Positions 1,019-40,319 of a stretch of DNA of 64,000 bases are shown here, piece after piece. Positions within the stretch are counted from its first letter, which is position 1; the number at the start of each line of letters is the position of its first letter. Origin of the DNA: Schizochytrium sp. TIO01 (Eukaryota; Protista; Bigyra: Labyrinthulomycetes); NCBI GenBank assembly GCA_004764695.1, contig SMSO01000025.1, positions 2,108,001 to 2,172,000 of the forward strand, written 5' to 3'. Under the pieces are notes generated by a model. The model saw only the letters and a program-made list of their open reading frames with translations, had not been told where the DNA came from and did not search any database. The position numbers and the translations under genes were made by a program.

Positions 1019-3394
1019 TTACAGCCCTTTTAAATGAGCTTGCACATTGATGGGATTAGCCCTTCTTGAACTCGTACGGTAAAAGTGTTCAATAGGTACA
1101 GCAAGATCTCGCATCGATCCCAGTGTCTGTAGAGTAGCACGCACGGCCACACCTTCATCACTAGAGACTGAGATGTTGAAGTCCACAGGAAACGAACCAA
1201 GTGGGTCGCAATGCTCATTTACACACAGTAACGAAGAGCTATGTATTGACATAAAGTTGGCAGGAGCATGCCGGACCACAACCTCCATCGCAAGTTGATT
1301 ATGCTGAACCTCATGTACCTCCATATGAGCAATCGTCGACAACGTATTGACAACAAGAGGCTCGCTAATTGAGTCTTGCAATATCTGACCATCTCCAGTA
1401 AGAACAGCAGCATATATCTTTGTTTCTTGACCCAACTGCAACCTTCCTGGATCGGCATATACATCGTGCAGATGGTTGTCGAACACAAAATAACATTGTG
1501 GTGGAGGATACGAGAAATTTTTGTGTCCATACTGAAGACAGAACTGGGCACACGGGTTTTTGGCAGACCATTCCTCTGGGGATATACCAGGAAGAAGGTC
1601 TACAGCTGTTTCAAGCCTCAGATCTGGGTGAAAGCTTACATTTTGCATCGTTTGTGCTGCTGGCCAGTTGCCAGGATGCAATTCAACTTTTGCTCTTGCA
1701 AAGGTGTTATTTGAGAAAACTTCTCTCTGGTTCTGTTTTATGCTGTCTTTGTCTTGGTCATGTTGTGGGCAATCGGAGGTAAGAGATAGTTCATAAGTTC
1801 TCTCAACTCTGGACCCATAGCCTGGAATTGAACTTTTGGAATAGACCAACCATGGAACAGACTTGTAGGCTACAATGTACTCCTGGATCCACGCTTCTGC
1901 GAGAAACCAATCTACTCCTTGCGGCATACCAAATTTGTGAAATACATTGAGCAAGCGTCTGGCCCCTCGCTTCCGAAGCATATATCCGTGGGTTCCATAA
2001 CCAAAACTTCTACTAGTGCTGGGAAATGCTTCCACACCATCCCAAACATGAATCCCTGGATAAAACATCGGATCGTCGTTGAAGCCAAGCATCATGATGT
2101 CCCAGCGAGGATCTGACATTGACAAAGAGTGTCCTGGGCCTCGCTTCCATCTGTCAGCCACGTCTTTTGCAAAGTAAAAATCGTCCTCCAATATGATGAT
2201 ACTATCTAGATCACTCAAGTCGGTTCGCTTCGATAGCTTTGTCCAAAGTAGAATATGCGTTGCAGAGCATCCAAGAACTCCTGGACGATAGCAATGGCCC
2301 ACATTGGGATTTGTTACATTGAACCCATCTGTACGAAATAAATTACGAAGTTCAGTAGTAATAGCGAGTTCTTTACGCCCATTGATAGCACGGAAGCGCT
2401 CGTGTTTAGGCCAGAGATTATCAAGACCTGCAGTCCGGAAGTTCTCACGAGCCTCTGCCCAGCGGCCACTGTAGTCCTCATCCATATTGGCAACATAAAC
2501 GTTGGCCACTTTTCCAATTGAATGCAGAGTTGTATCGGGTCTATCGCTGCCCAAAATTTGAGGTTTCAGAACTGCAACAAAGAAGTTCTCCTGCTCCAGG
2601 ACATGAAAGCCGTGAATCTCAAACATGGATTGAACTGTGCTGGTAAGCTTTCCAATCACGACTATTTGGCCCATTGACGGGAGGCCTTGAGCAATTAGTT
2701 GGATATCCAAATCTGTCACTTGGTTAGCATTAACAACGAGGACTCTTGGGCGATGTTGTCGGAACAGATCTGTTTTCAAGATTGTTTTACTTATTGCTAA
2801 ACAAAGAGTCCCAGGACTATTTGAGATAGGTTGTGACTCTCCATGATTGATAAACGGGGTTTCAAACAAAGTGATGCCAGAGTTATTCAGTCTCGCAAGC
2901 GTAATATCCCAACTGCATGGGTCCATGACATAAACACAGTCGAGCCAGAGATTATGCCCAGGATGATCCCAGAACCTTTGTACTTCGTCCTTTCGAACTA
3001 TCGTTACCCGTTGAGAGAAGAGAAGCTCTTCAACAAGTACTTTTGGAGAGAAAGATGATAGTTTGGCAAGGCCATTTTCGACATAGCTCATCATAATCGT
3101 CTTGTCTGCTTCTTCAAGTGCTGTGATGTGCACCGCGATTTTCTCAACTACGCCTTGTATCTTCCTCTTTGGAACCAGGAGACAAGAACGTCTCTCCCGC
3201 ACGCTCACAAATGGCATCCACGTAGAGTTGTCTCGCTGGTCATTTTCGAACGTCACTTCTGTTGTGAAAGCTTCCTTACCTCGAATAGTGACAACGGTCG
3301 CAACCAGGAACAACAGCTGCAACATAGTTGCCACAATCGCCATGTACGAACGGCTAAGTCGCATGGAGTCCCGAGATGCTTTCGGTGCCTTCAT
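1019..3394 (-). CDS. GT25-family glycosyltransferase, type II membrane protein, array copy 1 (intact)
   Basis: ORF is open 1019-3424, first in-frame ATG at 3394 (MKAPKAS..). N-terminal hydrophobic anchor (MAIVATMLQLLFLVATVVTI). GT25 motifs VYVANM, RFRAING, GVLGCSATHILLW, IIILEDDF, GTHGYMLRKRGARRLL, GVDWF. Cys-containing C-terminal domain. Confidence 0.8.
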   Translation of the reverse strand: MKAPKASRDSMRLSRSYMAIVATMLQLLFLVATVVTIRGKEAFTTEVTFENDQRDNSTWMPFVSVRERRSCLLVPKRKIQGVVEKIAVHITALEEADKTIMMSYVENGLAKLSSFSPKVLVEELLFSQRVTIVRKDEVQRFWDHPGHNLWLDCVYVMDPCSWDITLARLNNSGITLFETPFINHGESQPISNSPGTLCLAISKTILKTDLFRQHRPRVLVVNANQVTDLDIQLIAQGLPSMGQIVVIGKLTSTVQSMFEIHGFHVLEQENFFVAVLKPQILGSDRPDTTLHSIGKVANVYVANMDEDYSGRWAEARENFRTAGLDNLWPKHERFRAINGRKELAITTELRNLFRTDGFNVTNPNVGHCYRPGVLGCSATHILLWTKLSKRTDLSDLDSIIILEDDFYFAKDVADRWKRGPGHSLSMSDPRWDIMMLGFNDDPMFYPGIHVWDGVEAFPSTSRSFGYGTHGYMLRKRGARRLLNVFHKFGMPQGVDWFLAEAWIQEYIVAYKSVPWLVYSKSSIPGYGSRVERTYELSLTSDCPQHDQDKDSIKQNQREVFSNNTFARAKVELHPGNWPAAQTMQNVSFHPDLRLETAVDLLPGISPEEWSAKNPCAQFCLQYGHKNFSYPPPQCYFVFDNHLHDVYADPGRLQLGQETKIYAAVLTGDGQILQDSISEPLVVNTLSTIAHMEVHEVQHNQLAMEVVVRHAPANFMSIHSSSLLCVNEHCDPLGSFPVDFNISVSSDEGVAVRATLQTLGSMRDLAVPIEHFYRTSSRRANPINVQAHLKGL

Positions 3395-3938
3395 CCCATC
3401 CAAAGAGGACAACTGTGTTGACAATGCGAGCTTAAGTACGTTGTGATCTAGATTTGGTTGTTTTGCTTAAACCTTTTCATCAATACAAAGTGCAAGCCAA
3501 GTCTGTGTCGACCGTTGGCATATTAAGCACTTCCGTTTTATTATTGTTTATTTAGAAAAAGAAAATAAAAAGGAATAATTTTTTATTTATTTTTTCACAA
3601 GTCAAAACTATTACGATATAGTTTTGTCAAGTATAGAACATATATATAGACTCAACAATTATTGAAGGCTTGCTGTTAGAGCTAGGTATTTTACACACAT
3701 AGTAACTTTAATCCGGAAATTTGCATTTGCAAACTTTTGAAAAAAACAAAGTGCTCCAATGGTCATTATGAGAAACGTCCACTAAAACTTTAGTCTGGGT
3801 ACGTTTTCACTATAGATTTTATTTGAATTCAATCTCCTCTTGAGTCACATTGCCTTCGCTTCGTGGATTCTCTCATTGAATGTTTATTTGCACTATTAAT
3901 TTTTCCTGTTCGCTATGTTTTCTTGATCCGGTCGTCGC

Positions 3939-4088
3939 TAACTCGTGGTCCAGAATCATCTCAATACAAGCAAACTGGTATCATTGCAATTAAATAAAGC
4001 TTATAGTCATTCTTTAACTCATGGTCCAGAATCACCTCGATACAAGCACCCTGGTATTATGGAAATTGATTAAAGCTTACAGTTATTC
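3939..4088. repeat. Imperfect ~76-bp tandem duplication in the 3' spacer (second instance at 7106-7255)
   Basis: taactcgtggtccagaatcatctcaatacaagc... is followed by taactcatggtccagaatcacctcgatacaagc... Confidence 0.75.
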
Positions 4089-4186
4089 AAGTCAACGGAT
4101 TTTAAATAAAGAATCACAACGCTTCATATATCAATACTTGTCATCCTTCGATTTTGTGAGATATGAATATCTACAAGCTGAGCCAT

Positions 4187-6561
4187 CTACAAACCTCTCA
4201 GAAGAGCGCGTACATTTACAGGGTTTCTAGTTCCGGAACTCGTACGGTAAAAGTGTTCAATAGGTACAGCAAGATCTCGCATCGATCCCAGTGCCTGCAG
4301 AGTAGCACGCACGACTACACCTTCATTACTAGAGACTGAGATGTTGAAGTCCACAGGAAACGAACCAAGTGGGTCGCAATGCTCATTTACACACAGTAAC
4401 GAAGAGCTATGTATTGACATAAAGTTGGCAGGAGCATGCCGGACCACAACCTCCAGCGCAAGTTGATTATGCTGAACCTCATGTACCTCCATATGAGCAA
4501 TCGTCGACAACGTATTGACAACAAGAGGCTCGCTAATTGAGTCTTGCAATATCTGACCATCTCCAGTAAGAACAGCAGTATAAATCTTTGTTTCTTGACC
4601 CAACTGCAACCTTCCTGGATCGGCATATACATCGTGCAGATGGTTGTCGAACAAAAAATAACATTGTGGTGGAGGATACGAGAAATTTTTGTGTCCATAC
4701 TGAAGACAGAACTGGGCACACGGGTTTTTGGCAGACCATTCCTCCGGGGATATACCAGGAAGAAGGTCTACAGCTGTTTCAAGCCTCAGATCTGGGTGAA
4801 AGCTTACATTTTGCATCGTTTGTGCTGCTGGCCAGTTGCCAGGATGCAATTCAACTTTTGCTCTTGCAAAGGTGTTATTTGAGAAAACTTCTCTCTGGTT
4901 CTGTTTTATGCTGTCTTTGTCTTGGTCATGTTGTGGGCAATCGGAGGTAAGAGATAGTTCATAATTACTCTCAACTCTGGACCCATAGCCTGGAATTGAA
5001 CTTTTGGAATAGACCAACCATGGAACAGACTTGTAGGCTACAATGTACTCCTGGATCCACGCTTCTGCGAGAACCAATCTACTCCTTGCGGCATACCAGA
5101 TTTGTGAAATACATTGAGCAAGCGTCTGGCCCCTCGCTTCCGAAGCATATATCCGTGGGTTCCATAACCAAAACTCCTACTAGTGCTGGGAAATGCTTCC
5201 ACACCATCCCAAACATGAATCCCTGGAAGAACTATAGGATCGTCGTTGAAGCCAAGCATCATGATGTCCCAGCGAGGATCTGACATTGACAAAGAGTGGC
5301 CTGGGCCTCGCTTCCATCTGTCAGCCACGTCTTTTGCAAAGTAAAAATCGTCCTCCAATATGATGATGCTGTCTAGATCACTCAAGTCGGTTCGCTTCGA
5401 TAGCTTTGTCCAAAGTAGAATATGCGTTGCAGAGCATCCAAGAACTCCTGGACGGAATCCATGGTCAGTGTAAGGGTTGGTTACATTGAACCCATCTGTA
5501 CGAAATAAATTACGAAGCTCAGTAGTAATAGCGAGTTCTTTACGCCCATTGATAGCACGGAAGCGCTCGTGTTTAGGCCAGAGATTATCAAGACCTGCAG
5601 TCCGGAAGTTCTCACGAGCCTCTGCCCAGCGGCCACTGTAGTCCTCATCCATATTGGCAACATAAACGTTGGCCACTTTTCCAATTGAATGCAGAGTTGT
5701 ATCGGGTCTATCGCTGCCCAAAATTTGAGGTTTCAGAACTGCAACAAAGAAGTTCTCCTGCTCCAGGACATGAAAGCCGTGAATCTCAAACATGGATTGA
5801 ACTGTGCTGGTAAGCTTTCCAATCACGACTATTTGGCCCATTGACGGGAGGCCTTGAGCAATTAGTTGGATATCCAAATCTGTCACTTGGTTAGCATTAA
5901 CAACGAGGACTCTTGGGCGATGTTGTCGGAACAGATCTGTTTTCAAGATTGTTTTACTTATTGCTAAACAAAGAGTCCCAGGACTATTTGAGATAGGTTG
6001 TGACTCTCCATGATTGATAAACGGGGTTTCAAACAAAGTGATGCCAGAGTTATTCAGTCTCGCAAGCGTAATATCCCAACTGCATGGGTCCATGACATAA
6101 ACACAGTCGAGCCAGAGATTATGCCCAGGATGATCCCAGAACCTTTGTACTTCGTCCTTTCGAACTATCGTTACCCGTTGAGAGAAGAGAAGCTCTTCAA
6201 CAAGTACTTTTGGAGAGAAAGATGATAGTTTGGCAAGGCCATTTTCGACATAGCTCATCATAATCGTCTTGTCTGCTTCTTCAAGTGCTGTGATGTGCAC
6301 CGCGATTTTCTCAACTACGCCTTGTATCTTCCTCTTTGGAACCAGGAGACAAGAACGTCTCTCCCGCACGCTCACAAATGGCATCCACGTAGAGTTGTCT
6401 CGCTGGTCATTTTCGAACGTCACTTCTGTTGTGAAAGCTTCCTTACCTCGAATAGTGACAACGGTCGCAACCAGGAACAACAGCTGCAACATAGTTGCCA
6501 CAATCGCCATGTACGAACGGCTAAGTCGCATGGAGTCCCGAGATGCTTTCGGTGCCTTCAT
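4187..6561 (-). pseudogene. GT25-family glycosyltransferase, array copy 2 (frameshifted chimera)
   Basis: Split into ORFs 5038-6591 and 4187-5077 by a 1-bp deletion at ~5072 (coding GAT TGG TTT CTC in copy 1, GAT TGG TTC TC here). N-half matches copy 1, C-half matches copy 3. Confidence 0.75.
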
Positions 6562-7353
6562 CCCATCCAAAGAGGACAACTGTGTTGACAATGCGAGCTT
6601 AAGTACGTTGTGATCTAGATTTGGTTGTTTTGCTTAAACCTTTTCATCAATACAAAGTGCAAGCCAAGTCTGTGTCGACCGTTGGCATATTAAGCACTTC
6701 CGTTTTATTATTGTTTATTTAGAAAAAGAAAATAAAAAGGAATAATTTTTTATTTATTTTTTCACAAGTCAAAACTATTACGATATAGTTTTGTCAAGTA
6801 TAGAACATATATATAGACTCAACAATTATTGAAGGCTTGCTGTTAGAGCTAGGTATTTTACACACATAGTAACTTTAATCCGGAAATTTGCATTTGCAAA
6901 CTTTTGAAAAAAACAAAGTGCTCCAATGGTCATTATGAGAAACGTCCACTAAAACTTTAGTCTGGGTACGTTTTCACTATAGATTTTATTTGAATTCAAT
7001 CTCCTCTTGAGTCACATTGCCTTCGCTTCGTGGATTCTCTCATTGAATGTTTATTTGCACTATTAATTTTTCCTGTTCGCTATGTTTTCTTGATCCGGTC
7101 GTCGCTAACTCGTGGTCCAGAATCATCTCAATACAAGCAAACTGGTATCATTGCAATTAAATAAAGCTTATAGTCATTCTTTAACTCATGGTCCAGAATC
7201 ACCTCGATACAAGCACCCTGGTATTATGGAAATTGATTAAAGCTTACAGTTATTCAAGTCAACGGATTTTAAATAAAGAATCACAACGCTTCATATATCA
7301 ATACTTGTCATCCTTCGATTTTGTGAGATATGAATATCTACAAGCTGAGCCAT

Positions 7354-9699: not shown

Positions 9700-10554
9700 G
9701 ACAATCACAAAGTCCAACTGCAGAGAGCACCAATTGATCGCGATCAAAATCAAGTCTGCCTTCAATCATACTTAGCACAAAGTGTATTCTGAAAGAAGTC
9801 TTTGCTGACAATTGCACATTACTGTCTGCTAGGTAGGTAGGTAGGTATTACCAGCAATACTTTTCGGTTCAATCAATGCTCCTAGAGTTCAACAGGTCGT
9901 GGTGCTAACTAGATCCTATAGGTTTGAATAAAATTCTCGTTGACTTTTAATTTTAATTTTTCTGTAATATAAAAAGCTTTCGTTCACTTTTAATTTTATT
10001 TTTACTGTGATATAAAACATTTTAAATAAAAAGATTAACGATCTAAATTGGCAACAAAGAACAAACAAGACTAGCTAGGCCTAGATGTTGTACATAAACT
10101 GAGCAACGAATAAAGGGTTGCTTGTTGCTAGAGCAAAGCGCTCTGAATATAGAACGCCGTTTGTGAATATTCTTGAAGAAAACCCCTGTAGAGACACTAA
10201 CTATCCAGAAATCTCAACGCTCAAAAGAAAGGTGTAATAAATTTTTGCTTTACGTACGTTCTCATTACATTGTTTTAATTCAACTTGATCTTGAGCAGCA
10301 TAAATTTTGCTGTGTAAATGCTCTCATTCAATATTTATTTGCAATCCAAATTTCTCCAGTGAGCTAGTGTGTAGTGTTTTGCTTTTTTAATGGTTCCCTT
10401 TCACTCGTGAAGCCGAAGCATCTCGATATAGTGACACTGGTATCGTACATATATAATAAAACTGTAAATTTTCATGGGTATCGAATATTGATGAAGATGC
10501 AATCTTCTTCTTCGACAGATTTTGTGAGATATGAATATCTACAAGCTGAGCCAT

Positions 10555-12897
10555 CTACAAACCTCTCAGGAGAGCGCGTACATTTACAGGGTTTCTGGTT
10601 CCTGAACTCGTACGGTAAAAGTGTTCTATAGGTATTGCAAGATCTCGCATCGATCCCAGTGTCTGCAGAGTAGCACGCACGACTACACCTTCATTACTAG
10701 AGACTGAGATGTTGAAGTCCACAGGAAACGAACCAAGTGGGTCGCAATGCTCATTTACACACAGTAACGAAGAGCTATGTATTGACATAAAGTTGGCAGG
10801 AGCATGCCGAACCACAACCTCCATCGCAAGTTGATTATGCTGAACCTCATGTAACTCCATATGAGCAATCGTCGACAATGTATTGACAACAAGAGGCTCG
10901 CTAATTGAGTCTTGAAATATCTGACCATCTCCAGTAAGAACAGCAGCATAAATCTTTGTTTCTTGACCCAACTGCAACCTTCCTGGATCGGCATATACAT
11001 TTTGCACATGGTTGTCGAACAAAAAATAACATTGTGGTGGAGGATACGAGAAGTTTTTGTGTCCATACTGAAGACAGAACTGAGTGCACCGGTGTTTCGC
11101 AGACCATTCCTCCGGGGATATACCAGGAAGAAGGTCTACAGCTGTTTCAAGCCTCAGATCTGGGTGAAAGCTTACATTTTGCATCGTTTGTGCTGCTGGC
11201 CAGTTGCCAGGATGCAATTCAACTCTTGCTCTTGCAAGTAAACTGCTTGAGCTCTGTCGAATACGAAGTTCATCTTTGTTATTTTCAGCACAACCGGTAG
11301 TAGTCGATCGTTGATACTCACTCTCAGTTTTGGACCCATAGCCTGGATTTGAACTTTTGGAATAGACCAACCATGGAACAGACTTGTAGGCTACAATGTA
11401 CTTCAAGGTCCACGCTTCTGCAAGAAACCAATCCACTCCTTGCGGCATACCAAATTTGTGAAATACATTGAGCAAGCGTCTGGCCCCTCGCTTCCGAAGC
11501 ATATATCCGTGGGTTCCAGTCCCAACACTCCTACTAGTGCTGGGAAATGCTTCCACACCATCCCAAACATGAATCCCTGGAATAAATATCGGATCGTCGT
11601 TGAAGCCAAGCATCATGATGTCCCAGCGAGGATCTGACATTAACAAAGAGTGGCCTGGGCCTCGCTTCCATCTGTCAGCCACGTCTTTTGCAAAGTAAAA
11701 ATCGTCCTCCAATATGATGATACTATCTAGATCACTCAAGTCGGTTCGCTTCGATAGCTTTGTCCAAAGTAAAATATGCGTTGCAGAGCATCCCAGAACA
11801 CCTGGACGGAATCCATGGCCAGTATAAGGGTTGGTTACATTGAACCCATCTGTACGAAATGAATTACGAAGTTCAGTAGTAATAGCGAGTTCTTTACGCC
11901 CATTGATAGCGCGGAAGCGCTCGTGCTTAGGCCAGAGATTATCAAGACCTGCAGTCCGGAAGTTCTCACGAGCCTCTGCCCAGCGGCCACTGTAGTCCTC
12001 ATCCATATTGGCAACATAAACGTTGGCCACTTTTCCAATTGAATGCAGAGTTGTATCGGGTCTATCGCTGTCCAAAATTTGAGGCTTCAGAACGGCGACA
12101 AAGAAATTCTCCTGTTCCAAGACGTGAAAACCGTGGACATTAAACACTGATTGTATTGCACTAGTAAGTTCCCCAAGCACCACCACTTTGCCCATTGACG
12201 GGAGGCCTTGAGCAATTAGTTGGATATCCAAATCTGTCACTTGAGTTTTATTGACAACGAGGACTCTCGGTCGACGTTGTCGGAAGATATCTGTCTTCAA
12301 GATAGTTTTGCTAATCGCCATGCACAGTGTTCCAGGAGCGTTTAAATAAGATTGTGGCTCTTCATAGGTAATGAATGGAGAATCAAACAAAGTGATGCCA
12401 GAGTTGTTGAGCCTTGCGAGCGTAAAATCCCAAATGCATGAGTCTATTACGTAGACACAGTCCAGCCATAAAGCTGGCGAAGGATTATCCCAGAATCTCT
12501 GAACTTCATCTTTTCGTAATGCGAACATACTTTGATAATAGGAGAGGTCTTCAACAACAATATCTGATGAAGATGACAGTTCGACAAGTCCGTTTTCTGC
12601 ATAGCTCCTCAAAACTGATTGGTCTGCATCTTCAAATGCTGTTGTGTGCAATGTGATATACTGGACTTCCTCCCCTATCATATTTGTCGGAATCTGTAGA
12701 CAAGAGCGTCTTTCCCGCACGCTCACAAACGGCATCCAAACAGAGCCGCCTTTCTGAGCATCCCCACAAGTATTGACAACAGCCTCGCCACGAATTTTGA
12801 GGATAGTTGATACTAGCACGAACAGCTGAAGCATAGCTGCCGCAATCGCCATAAACTGACGGCTCCATCGCACCAAGCTGCAGTGGGATGCCTTCAT
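10555..12897 (-). CDS. GT25-family glycosyltransferase, array copy 4 (intact)
   Basis: ORF is open to 12963, ATG at 12897 (MKASHCS..); all GT25 motifs as in copy 1. Confidence 0.8.
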   Translation of the reverse strand: MKASHCSLVRWSRQFMAIAAAMLQLFVLVSTILKIRGEAVVNTCGDAQKGGSVWMPFVSVRERRSCLQIPTNMIGEEVQYITLHTTAFEDADQSVLRSYAENGLVELSSSSDIVVEDLSYYQSMFALRKDEVQRFWDNPSPALWLDCVYVIDSCIWDFTLARLNNSGITLFDSPFITYEEPQSYLNAPGTLCMAISKTILKTDIFRQRRPRVLVVNKTQVTDLDIQLIAQGLPSMGKVVVLGELTSAIQSVFNVHGFHVLEQENFFVAVLKPQILDSDRPDTTLHSIGKVANVYVANMDEDYSGRWAEARENFRTAGLDNLWPKHERFRAINGRKELAITTELRNSFRTDGFNVTNPYTGHGFRPGVLGCSATHILLWTKLSKRTDLSDLDSIIILEDDFYFAKDVADRWKRGPGHSLLMSDPRWDIMMLGFNDDPIFIPGIHVWDGVEAFPSTSRSVGTGTHGYMLRKRGARRLLNVFHKFGMPQGVDWFLAEAWTLKYIVAYKSVPWLVYSKSSNPGYGSKTESEYQRSTTTGCAENNKDELRIRQSSSSLLARARVELHPGNWPAAQTMQNVSFHPDLRLETAVDLLPGISPEEWSAKHRCTQFCLQYGHKNFSYPPPQCYFLFDNHVQNVYADPGRLQLGQETKIYAAVLTGDGQIFQDSISEPLVVNTLSTIAHMELHEVQHNQLAMEVVVRHAPANFMSIHSSSLLCVNEHCDPLGSFPVDFNISVSSNEGVVVRATLQTLGSMRDLAIPIEHFYRTSSGTRNPVNVRALLRGL

Positions 12898-21706: not shown

Positions 21707-24082
21707 CTACAGCCCTCTCAACACAGCGCGCACGTTTACGAAATCAATCTCTCCTGAACTTGTACGATAAAAATGCTCTATGGGTATAGCAAGATCTCGT
21801 TCTGATCCTAATGTTTGTAAGGTAGCATTCACAGCCAAGCCTTCATTGCTAGAGACAGAAACGTTAAAGTCTACAGGAAATGACGCAAGTGGATCACAAT
21901 GCTCATTCACACACAGCAATGATGAGCTGTGTATGGTCATAAAATTGGCAGGAGCATGCGAAATTACGACCTCCAGCTCAAGCTGATCGGGCTGGACCTC
22001 ATATAGTTCCATATGAGCAACTGTCGTAGAAGCATTGACAACAAGAGGTTCACTTATTGAGTTTTCCCATATCTGACCATCTGCAGTAAGCAACGCAACG
22101 AAGATTTTGGTTTCCTGACCTATTTGCATTCTCTTTGGATCGGAATATACGCTCTGAACATGGTTGTCGAACAGGAAATAGCATTGTGGCGGAGGATAAG
22201 AGAAGTTGTTGTGTCCATATTGAAGACAGAACTGTGCGCAGGGGTGTTTGGCGCGGAAATCCTCGACAGACACATCGGGAAAAAAGTCTAGACCTATGTC
22301 GAGAAGTAAATCCGGATGGAGAATCGGGTTTTGTATGGTATGCGAATCTGGGAGATTAGCAGGATTTAATGCGAGATTCATTTTTTTCGGGCCGTCGCTC
22401 AAAGATGTTTCTTTCTGGTTCTGTAGTTTAAATGTCCCACCTTGAGCATTTCGAGGACAGTGGGCAGTCTTGGAGTATACATAATCTTCATATGTCGTAG
22501 ATGGATATCCCGGAGATTGACTTTTTGAATATACTAGCCATGGGATAGATTTGTAGGCCACAATGTGATTCTGGACCCATGCTTCCATAACGATATGATC
22601 ATTGGATTGTGCCATCCCGAACGTGTGAATAAAATTGAGTAAGCGCTTCGCTCCTCGCTTCCGAAGCATATATCCGTGAGCTCCAAAACCAAAACTTCTA
22701 GAAGTGGTGGGGAAAGCTTCGACGCCATCCCATACCGGAATTCCTGGAATGAACCTAATATCGTTATAATAGCCAAGCATCATTACATCCCAGCGTGGAT
22801 CAGACATTGACAACGAATGACCAGGCCCTCGCCTCCATAGATCAGCCACGTCTTGTACAAAGTAAAAATCATCCTCCAAAATGATGATGCTATCCAGGTC
22901 ACTCAAGTCAGTTCGTTTTGCCAATTTTGTCCACAGTAGCAAATGTGTTACGGCACACCCGAGTGTCCCCCGACGAAAACCATGATCGCTATAAGGATTT
23001 CTGGGACTAAACTCGTTGACTCGAAAAATATTCCGGAGCTCAAATGTAATAGCAAGTTCTTTACGCCCATTGATCGCACGAAATCGCTCGTGCTTAGGCC
23101 AGAGATCACCAAGACCTGCGGTGCGAAAGTTCTCACAAGCCGCTGGGTAGCGTGCGCTATAGTCGTCTTCCATGTTAGCAACGTAGACGTTGGCGATTTT
23201 CCCAATAGAGTTTTGAGAAGCGTTAATGCTGTCGCTCTCCATAGCCTGAGGTTTCAGAACTGCGACAAAGAAGTTGTCATGCTCGAACACATGGAAACCA
23301 ACAGCCTCAAATATTGATTGAGCTGTGCTGGTGAGTCTTCCGAGTATGACTAACTTGCCCATTGACGAAAGCCCATGAGCAAGCACGCGAATATCCAAAT
23401 CTGCGACTTGACTTTCATCAATCACAATGACTCTCGGTCGACGCTGCCGGAAGATATCTACATTTACGACCGTTTTGCTAGCTGCTAAGCAAAGAGTTCC
23501 AGGAGAATCTAGATGACTTTGTGGTTCGTTATAGTTCACAAAAAGATATTCGAACAAAGTGATGCCAGAATTATTCAGTCTAGCCAACGAGACTTCCCAG
23601 GTGCACCTGTCTCTGATATACATGCAGTCAAGCCATAGAGCTGGCCCAGGGTTCTCCCAAAATTGTTGAACCTCCTCTCTTCGAACGCGCACCATCTTTT
23701 GAGCGTGGATAAGATCCTCTACGAGAGATTCTGGAGACTGAGAGGATACGTTGAGGAGGTTATTGGTCACAAAGTTGGTCATGAACGATCTGTCTAAAGA
23801 GAGAAATGCTGTGAAGTGCAGCTGTGCAACGCTGGTTACTCCCGCAACAACTTTCGCTGGAATGTTAAGACAAGACTGTCTCTCCAGTACGCTCTTGAAC
23901 GGCATCCAAGCAGAGTCGTCCACCATGCTGCTGTTACCAGCAAGTTCTATGTTGCAAGCATGTTCACTATGACTTTGGACGATCGTTGATAGTATCATCA
24001 ATAGTGGTAGCAAAACTACCACGATCGCTGTATCCCGATAGCTCCATCGCACCAATCTCCAGCAATCTCTGATTGCCGCCAT
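21707..24082 (-). CDS. GT25-family glycosyltransferase, array copy 7 (intact)
   Basis: ATG at 24082 (MAAIRDC..), ORF is open to 24115; motifs RFRAING, GTLGCAVTH, ILEDDF, GAHGYMLRKRGAKRLL. Confidence 0.8.
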   Translation of the reverse strand: MAAIRDCWRLVRWSYRDTAIVVVLLPLLMILSTIVQSHSEHACNIELAGNSSMVDDSAWMPFKSVLERQSCLNIPAKVVAGVTSVAQLHFTAFLSLDRSFMTNFVTNNLLNVSSQSPESLVEDLIHAQKMVRVRREEVQQFWENPGPALWLDCMYIRDRCTWEVSLARLNNSGITLFEYLFVNYNEPQSHLDSPGTLCLAASKTVVNVDIFRQRRPRVIVIDESQVADLDIRVLAHGLSSMGKLVILGRLTSTAQSIFEAVGFHVFEHDNFFVAVLKPQAMESDSINASQNSIGKIANVYVANMEDDYSARYPAACENFRTAGLGDLWPKHERFRAINGRKELAITFELRNIFRVNEFSPRNPYSDHGFRRGTLGCAVTHLLLWTKLAKRTDLSDLDSIIILEDDFYFVQDVADLWRRGPGHSLSMSDPRWDVMMLGYYNDIRFIPGIPVWDGVEAFPTTSRSFGFGAHGYMLRKRGAKRLLNFIHTFGMAQSNDHIVMEAWVQNHIVAYKSIPWLVYSKSQSPGYPSTTYEDYVYSKTAHCPRNAQGGTFKLQNQKETSLSDGPKKMNLALNPANLPDSHTIQNPILHPDLLLDIGLDFFPDVSVEDFRAKHPCAQFCLQYGHNNFSYPPPQCYFLFDNHVQSVYSDPKRMQIGQETKIFVALLTADGQIWENSISEPLVVNASTTVAHMELYEVQPDQLELEVVISHAPANFMTIHSSSLLCVNEHCDPLASFPVDFNVSVSSNEGLAVNATLQTLGSERDLAIPIEHFYRTSSGEIDFVNVRAVLRGL

Positions 24083-30493: not shown

Positions 30494-31057
30494 TTATAAT
30501 TTGTTGTCTTGCTTGGCATCGTTAAATCGTTGTTGGGAACCATTAAGTTTGTTTTGTTTTGTTTTTTCAAAATTTGAGAGCAAATCTAAATGAATGATTT
30601 GCATTTTCATACAATGTAAAGGAAACGGCTTCAAAACATTCTTCTTGAATTCATGTTCTTTGACTGCGAATTGAACAACCTGAGCTACCCCGTAGCCAGC
30701 AGCCCCGGCTAAAACAAAGCCGCTCACAACAGCAAAGGCCCCCATACCGGCTGTCAGTACTCCTGTGGCTCCTACAGACTGAAGCGTCGCAAAAGTACTC
30801 CCTGCCACTGTAAACGGCGTCTGCACGCTCGCAGCAAAACTTCCGGCTGCGACACCAGCCTGCGTAAAGCCCATTGCCTGGACGGTGCCCATAGCGGCGG
30901 CTGGAGCAGCAGAGCTCCCAATTACACCTGCGGCTACAGTTGCTCCGCCGTTCACAAGCTGTTTCTCGCTTCGGTTGAGCCCGCCGCCAGACTTGAGATA
31001 GCTTTTGACTGAGCCAATATAGACTTCTACAATTTTCGAATGCATGTCTGCATTCAT
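30494..31057 (-). CDS. IFI27/ISG12-like protein (Ifi-6-16 family)
   Basis: Hallmark Gly/Ala-rich ISG12 motif AMGFTQAGVAAGSFAASVQ...AGSTFATLQSVGATG flanked by hydrophobic segments. Confidence 0.75.
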   Translation of the reverse strand: MNADMHSKIVEVYIGSVKSYLKSGGGLNRSEKQLVNGGATVAAGVIGSSAAPAAAMGTVQAMGFTQAGVAAGSFAASVQTPFTVAGSTFATLQSVGATGVLTAGMGAFAVVSGFVLAGAAGYGVAQVVQFAVKEHEFKKNVLKPFPLHCMKMQIIHLDLLSNFEKTKQNKLNGSQQRFNDAKQDNKL

Positions 31058-33256: not shown

Positions 33257-36200
33257 ATGGTGGCACCTTTAACTTGTTGGCGCCCTTTCTGGGCAAGAAG
33301 AGAAGGAGGCATATTGGGCTGCTCCAGCTCTCCACAATCATCGTCATCCAGTTCTCTCTTCTCGAAATCATTGTGGAGTTTTCAGATGCAATTCGTGCTA
33401 AGTGCATTGACCTGCTTGCTAGTTCTGTCAAGAGTGCAAGTAACCAATGCAATGACCACATATGGCACCAAATACCTTGTAGACAACCTAAATCGTGATG
33501 TCGACAATCATATGAGGGTTGGCGATCTGATTCAAGTCACTTTCAGGCCATGTGTATCCTGCTCACTCGTGGTCACAGATTGGATATACCCTGAAACTGG
33601 GGTTACCTTGGTTGAGACCACAAATGATAACTATACCGCAACGTTCAAGTTTAGTCAAGAAGGGAACTTTCCAATTTCGGTCTCGGCAGAGGATAGCCAA
33701 GGCCAGACAACCACGCAAGACATGATTCTTATCAACGTGCACAGCAGTGTTGTCCGGTGTCATATATGGCGAACATGCTTCACATTCGCTTCAGACGAAA
33801 ATGTTGACTCTGCTGAGTGTCTCACTTTGTGGACAGCCATGTCATCAGCGATTTATGCAAACCTAACCCTTCGCATTTGGCTTGGCCATGCGACGGATGT
33901 TATGCGTGTTGCTGACGAACCTTTCTATATGACTGAAGAAGAAACCATTCTAACTGAAGAGATGTATCTTCTTGGAGAAGAGCCACGCGCAGAAATTATT
34001 AAGGGGCCCTTACGTGGTCTTACTGATCCAGTGGTTGTTTTACAAGATGCAGATGATGATGGGGTCGCACGCGCTACGTTTGATGCTGAAGGAAAATTTT
34101 GGAAAATAGATCTTTACACAAACCTTGCTAATACGAGCTCCTCTGCTATGCTTGACTTCGCGGGGGGTACTTTGGAAATAAAACTTCAAGGCCAGTCTGT
34201 CAACACGATGGGCTGCTCAGCAGAATCACGTGAACTGTGGCTAGACCTTCCAAAGTATATTTTTTCTGAAATGGACACATCATTGACTATACCAGAGGAA
34301 AACTTAACTTCTGCAGAGATCCTTGCTCAAGACATTTGCTCGCCTACAATAATACTGGAATCGTCATCCTCATCACAAGGAGCTTGGATGATTCAAGGTT
34401 TGCTTGCTAGCGCTACCTCTAATGCTTCATCAATTGAATACGTCGCAGCTCACGCTTCTGGAGCTGATATACTCAGTGTGGCTGCCACGCGTCTTGGAAT
34501 AGTCTTCCTCCACCAATCTGGCTTGAGTCGCGTGAATGCTGTCCTCAGCCAGAATCAAGAGTCATCACACGTGGCCCAAAGTCTGCACGCAGAGATTTCA
34601 GGCCTTGGTTTGACTCATTTGGCTGCGCCGATGGCCTGTGATTGGGTGATGGACCATAAGGAAGCAACACGCAATGACATCCTTGCTGCTTGGAATGGAA
34701 ATTCAAGCGATGTGTCTGAGGTCTACTTTTTGAAATTCGAAAGCAACTCAACCTCTGTCCATGTAGAGTCTGTCTCACTCGATGGGATGTATACTATTCT
34801 ACAAGTACTTCCACTTGTTAGTGCAGCAAAGTCGGTGGTTCTTGTATACTCATCTACATCCTCCCAATATTCTGCACTTATAGTGAATGAAATCTCTGGC
34901 ACCGTAAGTGCTCTGGCTTCTCTCCCAAGTGGTCTGGGATCAAATTTGAAAATTGCGTCACCCATTATTCCGGATGGAAATCTCATTCTATGGAGTGGTC
35001 GAAGTCTTTATTTTTCGCCTAGTGGAGGAATGTCATGGCGCAGAATCATTTTTGCAACCTATGACTTGGCCATTTCAGACTTTGTTTTAAGCAATGAACT
35101 TGAAGATGAAAACGATGAGGTAGTTCAAGTTGTTACTGCTATCTCTGGCGAGTACATTATTCGCACAAAGTATGGCCGGCTCTATAAAGGTATGTTTGGG
35201 CTCGTGAAAGCAGTAGAAATGTATTCGCCTTTCCTTTCAAATGACCCTACTTTATCGTGGGTTCAATACAGGCCCGATGGATCATTACTGGGACTTTTTG
35301 GTGGGCCTGGGCACAATGTGCAAGTCGTCGAGATTGCTGAAATCTATAAAATCTCGACTAGTGCAGATACATGGAACTCTACCTTGCTTCAGGCTCTCGA
35401 TTTTTCCACTGCTCTCAAATGTCCATATCTTGAGTGGGACCAGCTTCCTCCAACAACTGATTCATTTTATGCTGATATGAACGATGAGATCGAGTCGACC
35501 ACAATCCTGACCTACGATGCCAGCATTGAAGGTATGCACATTGCATACCAGACATCTGATAGATTCATTATGGATATGGAGGCTTCTTCGGAGACTGTTT
35601 TGACGAGTGCAAACGGAAAGCTTCTACATCGTCGTCGTACAGTTCAGGCAGTGGTGCCACCAGAGACTAGTTCGCGTACTGGAGTTGGCTTACAGGCTCA
35701 GGCTTCTGGAAAGGTGGTTGTTCGAGCCGCGCCTACAAGATTTACGCAAACCTGTGAACATCCAACAAAAATGTTACAGATTCATGTTGGATGTCCTCGC
35801 GGGCGGCATTTGCGCTACAGTCCTCCGTCTGCCTATAGCCAACCGGCATCTTCAGTTGTCAGTTCAGAATGCAAATCTGAAGCTGAAAGTGCATCCACAG
35901 ATGATGAAGCCGATGCGATCAAGAAAGAGTGCACCTGTCGAAAATACAAGGATTACACAATTACGTTACCTAGAGATATAGTGAATGAGACACGCCTGAG
36001 GCATCAGGCTTCACTTACTGGTGAAGAGCTCTCATGGAGCGAGGATGATGTATCTTATAAGTTTGATATGGATACGTATGACTGCCCAACATTTATTCCA
36101 TACACATACTCCTTCAAGCCAGGCTTGGAAATTTGGGATGGGGACACGAAAGTGAAGGACGTTGATGCAGATTTTGTTGTCTTTGAAATGAATGGCCGAG

Positions 36201-36688
36201 AGGATTACACATATGGTCTAACGGCCTCTAACGTTGCGTGCCTTCGACGCCCTGATACATGGGACGAAAAGTTAGCTGCGGATCCAAATATTACGACTGC
36301 GTGGGGCAGTCATAATCATCAGTCTTGCTTTGTGATAGATTCGAATTCTTCAGAATCCAGTTCAGCTTGGGGAGACCTTCCTTATGAGATACTCAACGCG
36401 TCTGACTCCAATTATGTATCATTCAAGAACACTTTGCAAAAAGACGCGCCCTATGAGTTCATTGCGATTGTAGTGGACCCGGACTATAGCTTTTGCACAT
36501 TGCACGCATATTTTAGCGTAGAACCATACGGAATTCCTATTGATGCCTTCACGACATTTATTATCATTTTTTGCGTCGTCATGTGTAGCATGCTTATGCT
36601 TGCTTGCACTTACTTTATGCATCGCCGTGAAATCCTTGCTTCAGTACATAACCGAGACCAAATTGCGCAGTCCAAGAAAGTTTTATAG
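33257..36688 (+). CDS. CATSPERE: CatSper channel auxiliary subunit, epsilon/delta-like type I membrane protein
   Basis: C-terminal motifs HVGCPRGRHLR, ACLRRPDTW, WGSHNHQSCF, LPYEILNAS, FIAIVVDPDYSFCTL..FSVEPYG, then one TM helix, match the CATSPERE/CATSPERD C-terminal domain as I recall it. Likely real start is ATG 33386 (signal peptide MQFVLSALTCLLVLSRVQVTNA). Confidence 0.75.
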   Translation: MVAPLTCWRPFWARREGGILGCSSSPQSSSSSSLFSKSLWSFQMQFVLSALTCLLVLSRVQVTNAMTTYGTKYLVDNLNRDVDNHMRVGDLIQVTFRPCVSCSLVVTDWIYPETGVTLVETTNDNYTATFKFSQEGNFPISVSAEDSQGQTTTQDMILINVHSSVVRCHIWRTCFTFASDENVDSAECLTLWTAMSSAIYANLTLRIWLGHATDVMRVADEPFYMTEEETILTEEMYLLGEEPRAEIIKGPLRGLTDPVVVLQDADDDGVARATFDAEGKFWKIDLYTNLANTSSSAMLDFAGGTLEIKLQGQSVNTMGCSAESRELWLDLPKYIFSEMDTSLTIPEENLTSAEILAQDICSPTIILESSSSSQGAWMIQGLLASATSNASSIEYVAAHASGADILSVAATRLGIVFLHQSGLSRVNAVLSQNQESSHVAQSLHAEISGLGLTHLAAPMACDWVMDHKEATRNDILAAWNGNSSDVSEVYFLKFESNSTSVHVESVSLDGMYTILQVLPLVSAAKSVVLVYSSTSSQYSALIVNEISGTVSALASLPSGLGSNLKIASPIIPDGNLILWSGRSLYFSPSGGMSWRRIIFATYDLAISDFVLSNELEDENDEVVQVVTAISGEYIIRTKYGRLYKGMFGLVKAVEMYSPFLSNDPTLSWVQYRPDGSLLGLFGGPGHNVQVVEIAEIYKISTSADTWNSTLLQALDFSTALKCPYLEWDQLPPTTDSFYADMNDEIESTTILTYDASIEGMHIAYQTSDRFIMDMEASSETVLTSANGKLLHRRRTVQAVVPPETSSRTGVGLQAQASGKVVVRAAPTRFTQTCEHPTKMLQIHVGCPRGRHLRYSPPSAYSQPASSVVSSECKSEAESASTDDEADAIKKECTCRKYKDYTITLPRDIVNETRLRHQASLTGEELSWSEDDVSYKFDMDTYDCPTFIPYTYSFKPGLEIWDGDTKVKDVDADFVVFEMNGREDYTYGLTASNVACLRRPDTWDEKLAADPNITTAWGSHNHQSCFVIDSNSSESSSAWGDLPYEILNASDSNYVSFKNTLQKDAPYEFIAIVVDPDYSFCTLHAYFSVEPYGIPIDAFTTFIIIFCVVMCSMLMLACTYFMHRREILASVHNRDQIAQSKKVL

Positions 36689-37561
36689 ATTCGTAATCCT
36701 CTCTCAACTCAGCAAATGATTCTACGTCCCATGCCTGTAAAGATCTTCAATTAAAATGTTTTTAACATTAAAGAATCAATCAACTAATTAATTAATTTTA
36801 AAATAAAACGCTTCTTCTTTTTTCTATTAAGAGAATGAATGAATTAAATTAAATTAATTAGAATAAAGCATTTTAAAATTAAAAATATAGCAATATAATC
36901 CAAACTCTTTTTTATAAGCCTGCTGGAATTAACTAAAAACTTGTTTACATACATTATGTTAATTAAAAATAGGTAGCATAGTAGGTACTCATACCGCTAG
37001 TATAAATAATTATTACCAAACTACCAAAAGGTAGTTTTCTCCTCCGTTTCAAATATTTTTCACCCAATAATTTTTATTGTTTTTTTTTTTTTTGCGCAAT
37101 TTGTGTTTCGGTGCATTTAAAACATTTTTTTTATCGCTCAACTACCTAATACCTGCTATTTGTTTGACTAGTAAATGAATAAAGAGATTTCTGACAATTG
37201 AGGGTGAATGGTCGGTCTCCGGATACTAGTAACTAAGAACCTATCACTTTTCAATGCGATGGGTGCAATGAGTGTTGGCTTTTTTTTTTTTTTTTCGCTT
37301 TAGTAGAAGAAAGAGAAACAAAAACAGAAAGGTAAAATAAAGGAAGACTCTATATAACTAAAGAGAGCAGGACTACTACTACCAGTTCGTATAGAGCTGC
37401 TAAGCATAGTCATATGACATGTTCTTACTTGAGCTTTTACCTTGCTTGATGAGCTTTGCTAACCATAGCCCGTACGTGACTTTGTCCAGAAATAGTATTT
37501 TAGTACATTTTCCAATTTAAGATGTTGTACTTTTCAAAAGTACTATGTCTATCTTCAATAT

Positions 37562-37667
37562 TTAGGCCTAAGGCGAGATCTTGCTATACCTATTGAGCAC
37601 TTTTACCGTACAGGCTCAGGAAGGGCAAATTCCATACATGTTTCGCGCTCTGTTGAGAGGGCTATAG
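37562..37667 (+). pseudogene. 3'-terminal relic (~35 codons) of a tenth GT25-array paralogue
   Basis: Translates RRDLAIPIEHFYRTGSGRANSIHV/RALLRGL* (1-bp insertion), nearly identical to 40224-40319. Confidence 0.8.
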
Positions 37668-37934: not shown

Positions 37935-40319
37935 ATGAACGTCATGAATGCACCGACAGCATGCTGGGGCTCGATGCAATGGAGCTGGCGGAAAGTGGCG
38001 GTTGTGAAAGCTGTGCTACAGCTGTTGTTGGTAATGACTATTGTCAAAGTTGATGGTGAGACTATTCTCAACTCAGAGGCTACTTGCGAAAGTGAGCAGA
38101 TGGACAACTCTGCGTGGATGCCGTTTATGAGCGTGCGGGAGAGGCGCTCCTGCATTATAGTCCCAAAAAGTGATGCAGGGTATAAAGATGGCTATGTCAA
38201 GGTGTATACCACAGCATTTGAAGATGCTGATAGACCTTTTATGAGAAGTATATCGCAGATGAACTGACCAAAGTATCCTCTCGATCTCCAGAAGCTCTTA
38301 TGAAGGACCTTGTCTTCTCTCAAAAGGCATCTCTATTTCGAAGAAAAGAAGTCCAGAAATTCTGGGATGATCCTGGGCCATCTTTATGGCTTGACTGCGT
38401 CTATGTCATGGATACATGCAGTTGGGACTTTATATTTGCTAGATTGAACAACTCTGGTATCACCTTGTTCGAGTCTGCCTTTATTGATTATGAAGAGCCA
38501 CAAGCTTTTTTAAATGCCCCCGGGACACTATGCATGGCAGTTAGCAGAACAATCTTGCATACAGATCTTTTCCGACAGCGTCGACCAAGAGTTCTCATTT
38601 TCGATGAAAGTCAAGTTAAAGATGTCGACATTCAAATGATTGCTCAAGGACTCCCAGCGATGGGCAAAACGGTTGTGCTTGGAAAACCTACCAGTGCGGT
38701 GCAATCAATGTTTGAGGTCCACGGCTTCCACGTGGTAGAACAGGACAACTTCTTCGTCGCAGTTTTGAAACCCCACGTTGTAGAGAGTGACAACCCCGCT
38801 GCCGCTCAAAATTATATTGGAAAGGTTGCCAACGTGTATGTTGCCAATATGGATGAAGACTATAGCACACGCTGGCCAGAGGCTTGTGAGAACTTTCGTA
38901 CCGCGGGTCTTGCTGGTCTCTGGCCTAAGCATGAGCGATTTCGTGCTATCAATGGGCATAAGGAACTTGCTATTACTGTTGAGCTTTGCAAGTTGTTTCG
39001 GATAGATGGGTTTAATGTACAAAATCCCTTTGAAGATCATGGTTTCTGTTCAGGTGTACTCGGGTGTTCTGCAACGCATATTCTACTTTGGTCGAAACTT
39101 GCGAAACGAACTGACTTAAGAGATCTGGACAGTATCATAATTTTGGAAGACGACTTCTACTTTACAGAAGACATGGCTAGCAAATGGAAACGAGGTCCGG
39201 GCCATTCACTATCAATGTCTGATCCACGCTGGGACATCATAATGCTTGGGTTTAATAACGACGCTATGTTTACTCCCGGAATTCCGGTATGGGATGGCGT
39301 CGAAGCGTTTCCAAGCATTGGTAGAAGTCTTGGTTATGGAACCCACGGGTATATGCTTCGGAAGCGAGGAGCCAAGCGCTTACTTCGTCTTTTACATACT
39401 TTTGGAATGCCGCAAGGAGTGGATTGGTTTCTCGTAGAATCATGGGTCCAGAAATACATTGTGGCATACAAGTCTGTTCCATGGCTGATATATGCAAAAA
39501 GTGATACACCGGGCTATGAATCTAAGACTAAAGTAGGATATGAACGATCTATTACTGGTGAGTGTCTCCAATATGGCGAAGAAGAAACAGAACAGCTACA
39601 GAACCAAACTGAAACTTTCTTAAGCGAAGGCCCTATGAGAGCGTATCTCGCATTGTGTCCAGACACTTTAGCAGTCACAAAAACAACGGAGACTTTAACC
39701 CTTCACCCGGATATAAGTCTTAAAGTGAAGATAGACCTTCTCCCTGGTTTCAATCTAGAGAGTGTGCTCGCCAAACACCCTTGCGCGCAGTTCTGTCTGC
39801 AGTATGGACACAACAACTTTTCATATCCTTCGCCACAGTGTCATTACATATTTGACACATTTATTAAAAAGGGTGTATATACAGATCCAAAAAGGCTGAA
39901 ATTTGGCCAGGAAACAGAGATTTATGCCGCTATTCTTTCTGCAAATGGCAAGATTTGGCAGAACTCAATCAGTGAACCCCTTATCGTCAATGCTTCTGCG
40001 ACAGTTGCTCAAATGATATTATATGAGGTCCAGCCCAATCAGCTTGAGCTCGAGGTCGAAATTCTGCGTGCCCCTGCCAACTTCATGAGCATACATAGCT
40101 CATCATTACTGTGTGTGAATGAGTATTGTGATCCACTTGCGTCGTTCCCGTTGTCCTTTAACATCTCAGTCACTAGCAATGAAGGTGTGGCTGTGCGTGC
40201 TACCCTGCAGACACTAGGGCTCCAGGCGGGATCTTGCTATACCTATTGAGCACTTTTACCGTACAGGTTCAGGAAGGGCAAATTCCATACATGTTCGCGC
40301 TCTATTGAGAGGGCTATAG
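37935..40319 (+). pseudogene. GT25-family glycosyltransferase, inverted copy 9 (two frameshifts)
   Basis: ORFs 37830-38267 and 38300-40249 join after a 1-bp deletion at ~38250. A 1-bp insertion at ~40217 displaces the conserved end RDLAIPIEHFYRT..RALLRGL* (TAG 40317-40319). Confidence 0.75.

Follow-up and report, generated by a model that had tools for sequence, protein, structure and literature searches.

A tandem array of GT25 glycosyltransferase paralogues in Schizochytrium sp. TIO01 with mosaic copies and differences clustered on pocket-aligned loops

The window analysed here comprises 64,000 nucleotides (nt) of contig SMSO01000025.1 of Schizochytrium sp. TIO01, which is contig C24 of the genome that was searched (intron-poor, eukaryotic, 64 Mb in 37 contigs). 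It harbors an array of paralogous genes related to the glycosyltransferases (GT) of family GT25. The genes are arranged in tandem, they are mosaics of one another, and their differences cluster on loops which align with the substrate pocket of known GT25 enzymes. We interpret the locus as a lineage-specific tandem GT25 family, shaped by birth-and-death and by concerted evolution, in which old differences of the pocket loops were preserved, and assign a probability of about 0.65 to this reading. A preliminary description of the same DNA had proposed a recombination-driven diversification system, a view which we share only in part: recombination and the position of the variable patches on the pocket are supported, a dedicated system is not.

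Layout of the array and architecture of its proteins

The copies were counted from a listing of open reading frames (ORFs) together with a six-frame search of the entire 64-Mb genome. Eight paralogues lie on the minus strand within 1019-28044, with a period of 3.17-3.9 kb. They are followed by a plus-strand gene with a CATSPERD/E domain, a relic and finally the inverted copy C10 (Table 1). In total six copies are intact, three are frameshifted and one is a relic; as far as the assembly goes, both this count and the arrangement of eight tandem copies, an inverted copy and a relic agree with the preliminary description. The intact copies C1, C4, C5, C6, C7 and C8 comprise 797-803 codons if counted from the start of the ORF, with the first ATG located 7-22 codons inside. 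Elsewhere in the genome only one further paralogue was detected, on contig C13.

C1, the final gene of the array, has a 5' third, a patch I (see below) and a stretch of its last ~16 codons that are found in this copy only. In C2 a deletion breaks the ORF into parts of 517 and 296 amino acids (aa). C10 has two lesions of 1 nt each, namely a deletion near 38241-38246 and an insertion in a GGG run near 40216-40219. The coding sequences of C4 and C5 are 98.3% identical and, because the flanking spacer is homologous too, they are best explained by duplication of a whole unit. C4 to C8 each possess distinct flanks.

Table 1. Coordinates of the array copies, of features within them and of neighboring genes (window positions unless a contig is given)
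Feature	Position	Strand	Remarks
C1	1019..3424	-	intact; ORF of 801 aa, first ATG at 3394
C1 micro-block I	2288..2312	-	13/25 nt differ from C2/C3, 3 changes synonymous
C2	4187..6591	-	hybrid; 1-nt deletion (TTT to TT) at 5071/5072
C2 overlap zone	5522..5716	-	identical to both C1 and C3 (runs 46-1107 and 913-2444)
C3	7354..9765	-	hybrid; 1-nt deletion at ~8238 in common with C2; 11-nt deletion after 9616
C4	10555..12963	-	intact; ATG at 12897; copy used for the structure model
C4 GT25 catalytic domain	11359..12030	-	aa 312-535
C4 domain before GT25	12079..12477	-	aa ~163-295
C5	13758..16169	-	intact
C6	17015..19408	-	intact; old lineage with converted tracts
C7	21707..24115	-	intact
C7 micro-block V (lid loop)	22486..22531	-	15/39 nt differ from C8, some synonymous
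C8	25636..28044	-	intact
Gly/Ala-rich protein	30494..31057	-	187 aa
CATSPERD/E-domain protein	33257..36688	+	1143 aa, single-pass
Relic	37553..37666	+	final ~38 codons of a lost copy, 60-71% aa identity
C10	~37935..40316	+	inverted old-lineage copy; open apart from two 1-nt lesions
HD-domain (SAMHD1-like) protein	41672..43792	-	ORF unbroken
Multiple-WD40-propeller protein	45418..49362	-	1314 aa; ORF unbroken
Ankyrin + double-WW protein	51021..54287	-	ORF unbroken
ORF without Pfam match	56979..61535	-	1518 aa
Double FKBP	62599..63762	+	ORF unbroken
Distant paralogue	contig C13:3812360-3814606		821 aa, 43% identity; same three-domain architecture

The copies tested against Pfam (C1, C6, C7 and C10) matched the GT25 family (PF01755) with 39-45 bits at a cut-off of 24, and a profile of the family matches both Mimivirus R655 (E 7e-50) and human COLGALT1 (E 5e-36). 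C4 was modelled with AlphaFold2 from 100 sequences; the model reached a mean predicted local distance difference test (pLDDT) of 80 and a predicted template modelling score (pTM) of 0.78, with the GT25 domain above pLDDT 90. In a Foldseek search the catalytic domain matched R655 (9crz, E 6e-10), COLGALT1 (9evj/9u7h/8zgc) and a bacterial GT25 beta-1,4-galactosyltransferase (8xkd), all with a probability of 1.00. Both lines of evidence uphold the earlier assignment to GT25 with its GT-A fold. Thus PF01755 and the fold (Foldseek E values of 6e-10 to 1e-5) are what the array proteins have in common with the C-terminal catalytic domain (GT2/CGT) of COLGALT1, also named GLT25D1, and with R655 and LgtB-type GT25 enzymes.

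According to the model, C4 has an N-terminal transmembrane (TM) helix of 21 hydrophobic residues (aa 35-55), which represents a type II anchor and is preceded by a short cytoplasmic tail. It is followed by a methyltransferase-like domain, the GT25 domain, a poorly ordered linker and two beta-sandwich domains (aa 578-800), which resemble FN3/Ig-like domains in Foldseek. The array proteins would thus be located in the Golgi or endoplasmic reticulum and act within the secretory pathway. The domain before GT25, if modelled alone, is weakly similar to class I methyltransferases (Z 5-6.2, root mean square deviation 3-4 A over ~100 residues), with the non-catalytic domain of anamorsin/Dre2 amongst the matches, and it lacks the glycine-rich GxGxG motif for S-adenosylmethionine binding in C4. 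We therefore only tentatively call it a methyltransferase-like Rossmann domain. The full three-domain architecture is rare, since few proteins amongst 1.8 billion representatives cover it, compared to 467 matches for the GT25 domain alone. The ESM Atlas provided only weak GT25 leads with scores of 0.82-0.83.

The C4 GT25 domain contains the EDD metal motif, the uridine-stacking Cys, the catalytic-base Asp and the variable patches I-IV, and patch V, the lid loop, directly adjoins its end. Throughout the array EDD (413-415 in C1), G382, C386 and D505 are invariant. They align with E435-D436-D437, G408, C412 and D522 of COLGALT1, where E435-D436-D437 bind Mn2+ and ribose, C412 stacks with uracil and D522 is the catalytic base (PMC12987934, PMC12003778). 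Given the conservation of the EDD metal site and of the catalytic-base Asp, the copies are probably inverting UDP-Gal/Glc transferases. This activity, as well as the donor sugar and the choice of acceptor, is predicted here from sequence.

Variable patches on the aligned substrate pocket

Five short segments had been listed as variable in the preliminary description, and all forms given there are present as written: NPNVGHCYRPG (the one of C1), NPYTDHGFRPG, NPYKGHGFRQG, NPYSDHGFRRG and NPFEDHGFCSG for patch I; FNDDPMFY / IVL / IFI / VFI, FDSDAVFS and YYNDIRFI for patch II; FGYGT, VGTGT, LGYGS and FGFGA for patch III; QGVDWF, QGVDHF, QSNDHI and QANDHI for patch IV. Patch V, the loop after PWLVY, is variable as claimed, and with NPYTGHGFRPG, present in C4 and C5, the forms of patch I number six.

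For pocket mapping, the family profile was aligned to human COLGALT1 and read against the contact residues published with the ternary complex (PMC12987934) and the crystal structure (PMC12003778). In COLGALT1, G408, G411 and C412 form the uridine groove, K470 and Y494-W495 belong to the acceptor cleft, and the lid loop 560-580 touches both the acceptor and UDP (PMC12987934, PMC12003778). Patch I corresponds to the loop whose last residue is the Gly aligned with G408 in the uridine groove, patch II begins at the residue aligned with K470 in the acceptor cleft, and patch III lies where COLGALT1 has its Y494-W495 acceptor motif. Patch IV borders the catalytic base and takes in the position of E523, which is W or H in the array, and the lid loop 560-580 begins with patch V. 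In this profile alignment the variable patches hence fall on the donor/acceptor pocket.

Within the domain, the differences between copies are concentrated there. In near-identical pairs 8.5-19% of the pocket-aligned codons differ, compared to 0.5-2.6% of the remaining codons (odds 5-17, p 6e-5 to 3e-12), and in old pairs the enrichment is 2-3.5-fold. C4 and C5 show no pocket difference at all.

The EDD motif, the uridine-stacking Cys, the catalytic-base Asp and the C-terminal lid loop of COLGALT1 are aligned and conserved in the array. In contrast, the acceptor residues are replaced: K470 by N, D or Y, Y494-W495 by Y, T or F and by G, and E523 by W or H. Since the residues that bind hydroxylysine (Hyl) in COLGALT1 are not conserved, the acceptor would be something other than collagen Hyl-Gly. 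The proteins differ in further aspects as well. The N-terminal partner of the catalytic domain is a second GT-A lobe in COLGALT1, whereas it is the methyltransferase-like domain in the array proteins, which in addition possess two beta-sandwich domains and the type II membrane anchor. With the residues of the Hyl-Gly cleft replaced and no GT-A lobe at the N-terminus, we do not place the genes in the COLGALT subfamily.

Mosaic copies and dense micro-blocks

Along the coding alignment the identity between copies shifts stepwise, as seen in a table of sliding identities. The first ~700 nt of C3 are 99-100% C4-like and the remainder is identical to C2. C2 in turn shows zero differences to C1 in alignment columns 46-1107, with a 762-nt upstream spacer that is 100% identical, and it is identical to C3 from column 913 to the end (2444), so the stretch of 100% identity spans ~3.5 kb for C1/C2 and for C2/C3 alike. 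Being identical to C1 in its 5' part and to C3 in its 3' part, with an overlap of both, C2 has exactly the structure that an unequal crossover of C1 with C3 would generate, and the overlap zone (Table 1) is likely the site at which this crossover took place.

C6 is 92-97% C7/C8-like in columns ~1900-2100 and ~98% C4/C5-like in columns 2196-2447; elsewhere its identity is 45-87%. C7 and C8 are 98.7% identical, with 31 differing sites. Outside the coding sequence their homology covers only 24 nt on the upstream and 127 nt on the downstream side; the spacers of 1.5-2.5 kb are unrelated. Because the homology ends at these limits, conversion of the gene body explains the pair better than a recent duplication of the unit. 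In a Sawyer-type permutation test of the longest run (1155 polymorphic sites, permutation floor p 0.0005), the pairs C1/C2, C2/C3, C3/C4, C7/C8, C6/C7 and C5/C6 all gave p<=0.0005, and in trees of six segments C3, C6 and C1 switch clades with a support of 0.9-1.0. That recombination shaped the array, as had been claimed, is borne out by all of this: copies are chimeric and segment trees incongruent, and instead of uniform divergence without breakpoints we found stepwise identity and significant run tests. The long near-identical tracts described before are likewise real, amounting to 1370 nt in C7/C8 in addition to the ~3.5 kb given above.

Within these tracts the differences form dense micro-blocks. 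C7 and C8 have two stretches of 1370 nt and 640 nt without any difference, while 15 of their 31 differences fall into a single stretch of 39 nt, the loop after PWLVY. Before their divergent 3' end C1 and C2 differ at 36 sites, of which 13 lie within 25 nt of patch I and 5 within 9 nt of patch II. The clustering in the 39 nt of C7 and in the 25 nt of C1 was reached in 0/20,000 permutations. The blocks contain synonymous differences as well as codons hit two or three times, and therefore do not represent recent point mutations that were selected in a young duplicate. Inside them each copy shows 10-19 differences to every other copy, which equals the divergence of the oldest lineages. Visual inspection of the aligned DNA ruled out compensating frameshifts or small inversions as origin of the blocks.

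For neither block I of C1 nor block V of C7 was a second copy found in the 64-Mb genome at <=3 mismatches. Since the searches returned only the blocks themselves, no template of the kind used by diversity-generating retroelements (DGR) or cassette systems is present. Two readings remain, both of which require recombination: the blocks are either old divergence that was never erased, or imports from donors outside the assembly. The location of the blocks on the enzyme favors the former.

The latter could be entirely neutral. The blocks would then be short tracts converted from diverged donors that are now absent, with no bearing on specificity, and the donors themselves would be lost copies or alleles of a sexual population that lie outside a haploid assembly. 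The sharp edges of the blocks and their mixture of synonymous and replacement changes do resemble templated tracts, donors outside the assembly are conceivable, and transcript-derived proteins of another strain (see below) carry other combinations of tails. However, the blocks coincide with pocket loops far above what their length would predict, and they do so in independent pairs. Moreover, no donor was found within 64 Mb, and the C7 block is common to another strain. A neutral origin thus appears rather improbable to us.

Evolution of the array and competing explanations

The locus combines head-to-tail paralogues, crossover hybrids, conversion tracts, pseudogenes and a relic, the features by which concerted and birth-and-death evolution of tandem families is recognized. 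We propose that four or five old lineages (dS ~0.6-1.2) were repeatedly reshuffled, and that the hybrid genes C3 and C2 would have been made very recently by unequal crossover. Interlocus gene conversion would homogenize long tracts, namely between C7 and C8 (in the transcribed unit only), between C6 and C7/8 and between C6 and C4/5. Short islands on the pocket loops would escape this homogenization and stay as diverged as the oldest lineages. Selection would be the cause of these islands, keeping the old loop variants because the paralogues, each with a distinct acceptor specificity, would glycosylate different acceptors. A dedicated diversification machinery would not be needed for any of these steps, nor is one seen. 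A comparable outcome is known from RHD/RHCE, the red/green opsins and the peptide-binding codons of the MHC, where conversion homogenizes most of the sequence while the decisive segments, along with linked silent sites, stay diverged. In contrast to these cases, it is solely from the position of the islands that we infer selection here.

Overall, the genes of the array are under purifying selection. Between lineages the ratio of nonsynonymous to synonymous substitution rates (dN/dS) is 0.20-0.34 for whole genes, at a dS of 0.6-1.2. The ratio of the corresponding proportions (pN/pS) was determined by the Nei-Gojobori method in 25-codon windows and patch by patch. By region it is lowest in the GT25 domain (0.23), followed by the C-terminal domain (0.27) and the linker (0.61), and highest in the tail/TM/stem part (0.79); for the five patches it amounts to 0.29-0.67. 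No window or patch exceeded 1, though with five lineages and with recombination blurring the test its power is low. The statement that variation sits next to the catalytic motifs is correct within the GT25 domain. However, no other part of the protein is as conserved as this domain, and it is the tail/TM/stem region and the linker which are most variable.

These values also bear on the idea that the array serves dosage only, with redundant copies kept and homogenized to yield more enzyme. Dosage arrays typically contain long tracts of identity and evolve in concert, and C4 and C5 indeed lack pocket differences. Yet the lineages are separated by a dS of 0.6-1.2 and have distinct pocket loops, tails and linkers under purifying selection, and the homogenization bypasses precisely the pocket loops. 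Dosage as sole explanation is consequently very unlikely.

Several observations weigh against preserved pocket-loop divergence in a concertedly evolving family. Positive selection is not demonstrated, as no patch has a pN/pS above 1, and the islands could equally be imports from donors missing in the assembly. The boundaries of the pocket elements were set after the patches had been seen, which makes the enrichment test not fully independent. The pocket mapping consists of a sequence and profile alignment rather than of distances in a liganded model. Patch I, apart from its last Gly which touches uridine, has no described contact in either COLGALT1 paper, the paper on R699 deals with another enzyme, and a lid loop is naturally floppy. 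Finally, word depths in the public data labelled X1 have a ratio of ~1:2:3, compared to the expected 2:2:5, so the copy number of C1/C2/C3 may differ.

This last point leads to the integrity of the assembly. A sample of words from 4000-9900 was found to 58-78% in 20 public runs of 12 studies, and Logan contigs of four public runs were aligned over this interval; such contigs discard minority variants and cannot phase the blocks. On C2 and C3, most letters by which the contigs differ match C1 or C4/C5, meaning that these contigs are derived from paralogues. At the frameshift of C2 (5071) the contigs of three runs have the in-frame base and none has the deletion, with minority branches having been dropped. 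The listed contigs that span the 11-nt deletion of C3 (from 3/4 runs) all carry the 11 nt. The frameshift lesions are therefore seen in no contig of the four runs, but with paralogue contigs and dropped minority variants they are neither confirmed nor refuted. X1 supports a base at column 2339 that is specific for C2/C3. The words of this run reach a depth of ~590 in the C1-type spacer and 5' part, of 1257 in the pocket region of C4 type and of 1782 in the tract common to C1-C5. These depths hint at one C1-type unit instead of two, be it through a difference in copy number between strains or through over-expansion in the assembly. In one probable RNA run the gene bodies are covered ~116x and the spacer 1-17x, about ten-fold deeper.

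The assembly could hence be partly artificial, with over-expanded C1/C2/C3 units and 1-nt frameshifts that are homopolymer errors, leaving fewer copies and few or no pseudogenes. All 1-nt lesions lie in short runs (TTT to TT, AAGAAG to AGAAG, GG to GGG), and assembly indel errors at these sites are a live possibility. The contigs at 5071, the in-frame C10-type protein of another strain and the X1 depth ratios, which fit one C1-type unit, point in the same direction. On the other hand, the contigs at the lesions are mostly derived from paralogues, with minority branches dropped, so the absence of the lesions is unprobative. Furthermore, X1 backs the C2/C3-specific base, a deletion of 11 nt is untypical of read errors, and five long neighboring ORFs (700-1500 aa) are unbroken. 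For C4-C8, haplotype mixing is excluded by their distinct flanks, and the genome search detected no copy of the array on another contig. We consider a partial artefact unlikely, albeit not negligible.

Additional evidence comes from other strains. Transcript-derived proteins of the C6, C7, C10 and distant types exist in another strain (MMETSP and JGI sources), and if RNA-like contigs are included, the types C1/2, C4, C6, C7 and C10 are represented. P0001, a C7-type protein apparently from another strain, has 12 differences in 771 aa and an identical block V. Because the C7 block V is kept in P0001, the blocks seem stable rather than hypervariable. P0156 combines a C6-type body with a C7-type C-terminal tail, and P0153 is a C7-type protein with the same tail variant. 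The tail swap of P0156 may be a real strain-specific conversion or a chimeric transcript assembly. P0157, a C10-type protein with 98% identity, is in frame across the first C10 lesion of the window. A degenerate 26-mer common to all copies had no match in metagenome contigs, a collection that may exclude near relatives. One might speculate that the pocket loops are long-lived specificity cassettes on a common scaffold maintained by conversion. Selection would preserve ancient and strongly differing versions of the uridine-groove loop, the acceptor-cleft loops and the lid, which unequal crossover and conversion would reassort between copies and strains. We consider this possibility tentative and on balance unlikely; if true, populations would carry varying glycan repertoires, affecting recognition by viruses or grazers.

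The diversification system of the preliminary description would go further. Segments would be moved between copies so that new glycan specificities actively arise, and the broken copies would be silent sources of sequence, comparable to pilE/pilS, VSG or chicken pseudo-V conversion. The mosaic copies, the micro-blocks exactly on pocket loops and the good preservation of the three broken copies, aside from their lesions, would fit. However, the layout contains no expression site; each of the six intact genes has flanks of its own, and transcription is seen for several types. Truncated donor cassettes are absent; the broken copies retain their full length apart from one or two small indels, and C2 and C3 are very young hybrids which share one lesion. 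No tract of an intact copy is traceable to a broken one, no genomic donor was found for the block sequences at <=3 mismatches, and the C7-type protein of the other strain retains block V with 12 aa differences in 771. The dN/dS of 0.2-0.34 overall and a pN/pS below 1 everywhere do not suggest a diversity generator either. We thus regard such a system as extremely improbable and abandon the notion of a dedicated generator of diversity, together with that of broken copies as donors, for which no donation is demonstrable. With neither a single expressed locus served by silent donors nor any segment traceable to a donor, programmed diversification of the cassette type was rejected. The array reflects ordinary gene-family evolution, and no novel type of mechanism for generating diversity emerges from it.

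Comparable arrays are found in trypanosomatids, namely the SCG/SCGR genes of Leishmania and the UDP-glycosyltransferase multigene families of trypanosomes (PMC5853035), as well as tandem arrays of Trypanosoma brucei (PMC1855330). They resemble the present case in that their paralogues form irregular tandem arrays with recombination breakpoints, evolve in concert and show hardly any or no positive selection at the level of sites. However, they belong to another GT family and group of organisms, whereas the array described here is small and contig-internal and its surviving divergence is concentrated in few pocket-loop blocks of 25-40 nt. In Ostreococcus tauri, chromosome 19, termed the 'viral immunity chromosome', contains clustered and partly paralogous GT genes including GT25 paralogues, which were proposed to change surface glycans and virus susceptibility (PMC5082852). 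Both cases concern clustered GT genes with GT25 paralogues in a marine protist. While the link to viruses in O. tauri consists of expression changes and rearrangements of an outlier chromosome, no such link, expression switch or outlier composition was tested for or seen in our array, and a role against viruses or grazers would be speculation.

For glycobiology the array nevertheless represents a natural mutagenesis series of near-identical scaffolds that differ almost only in five GT25 pocket loops. Such a loop-swap series offers a direct route to what determines the choice of acceptor and donor in this family, for which structures became available only in 2025-26. With respect to genome evolution, it is a clean and small case of concerted evolution with homogenization-resistant islands in a little-studied group of protists.

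The distant paralogue on contig C13 has patches closer to the consensus of the wider family (NPYEGHGFRRG, GGGT) and is transcribed in another strain (P0002, MMETSP).

Besides the array, the window comprises a number of other genes (Table 1). The gene placed between the array and the inverted C10 encodes a protein with a CATSPERD/E C-terminal domain (PF22850, E 8e-35), here in a non-animal protist. The Gly/Ala-rich protein reached 28.4 bits for the interferon-induced 6-16 family, which is below the cut-off of 29.1. The long ORF without Pfam match contains an internal direct repeat of 391 nt, at 58041-58431 and 58563-58953, the two units of which are 97% identical.

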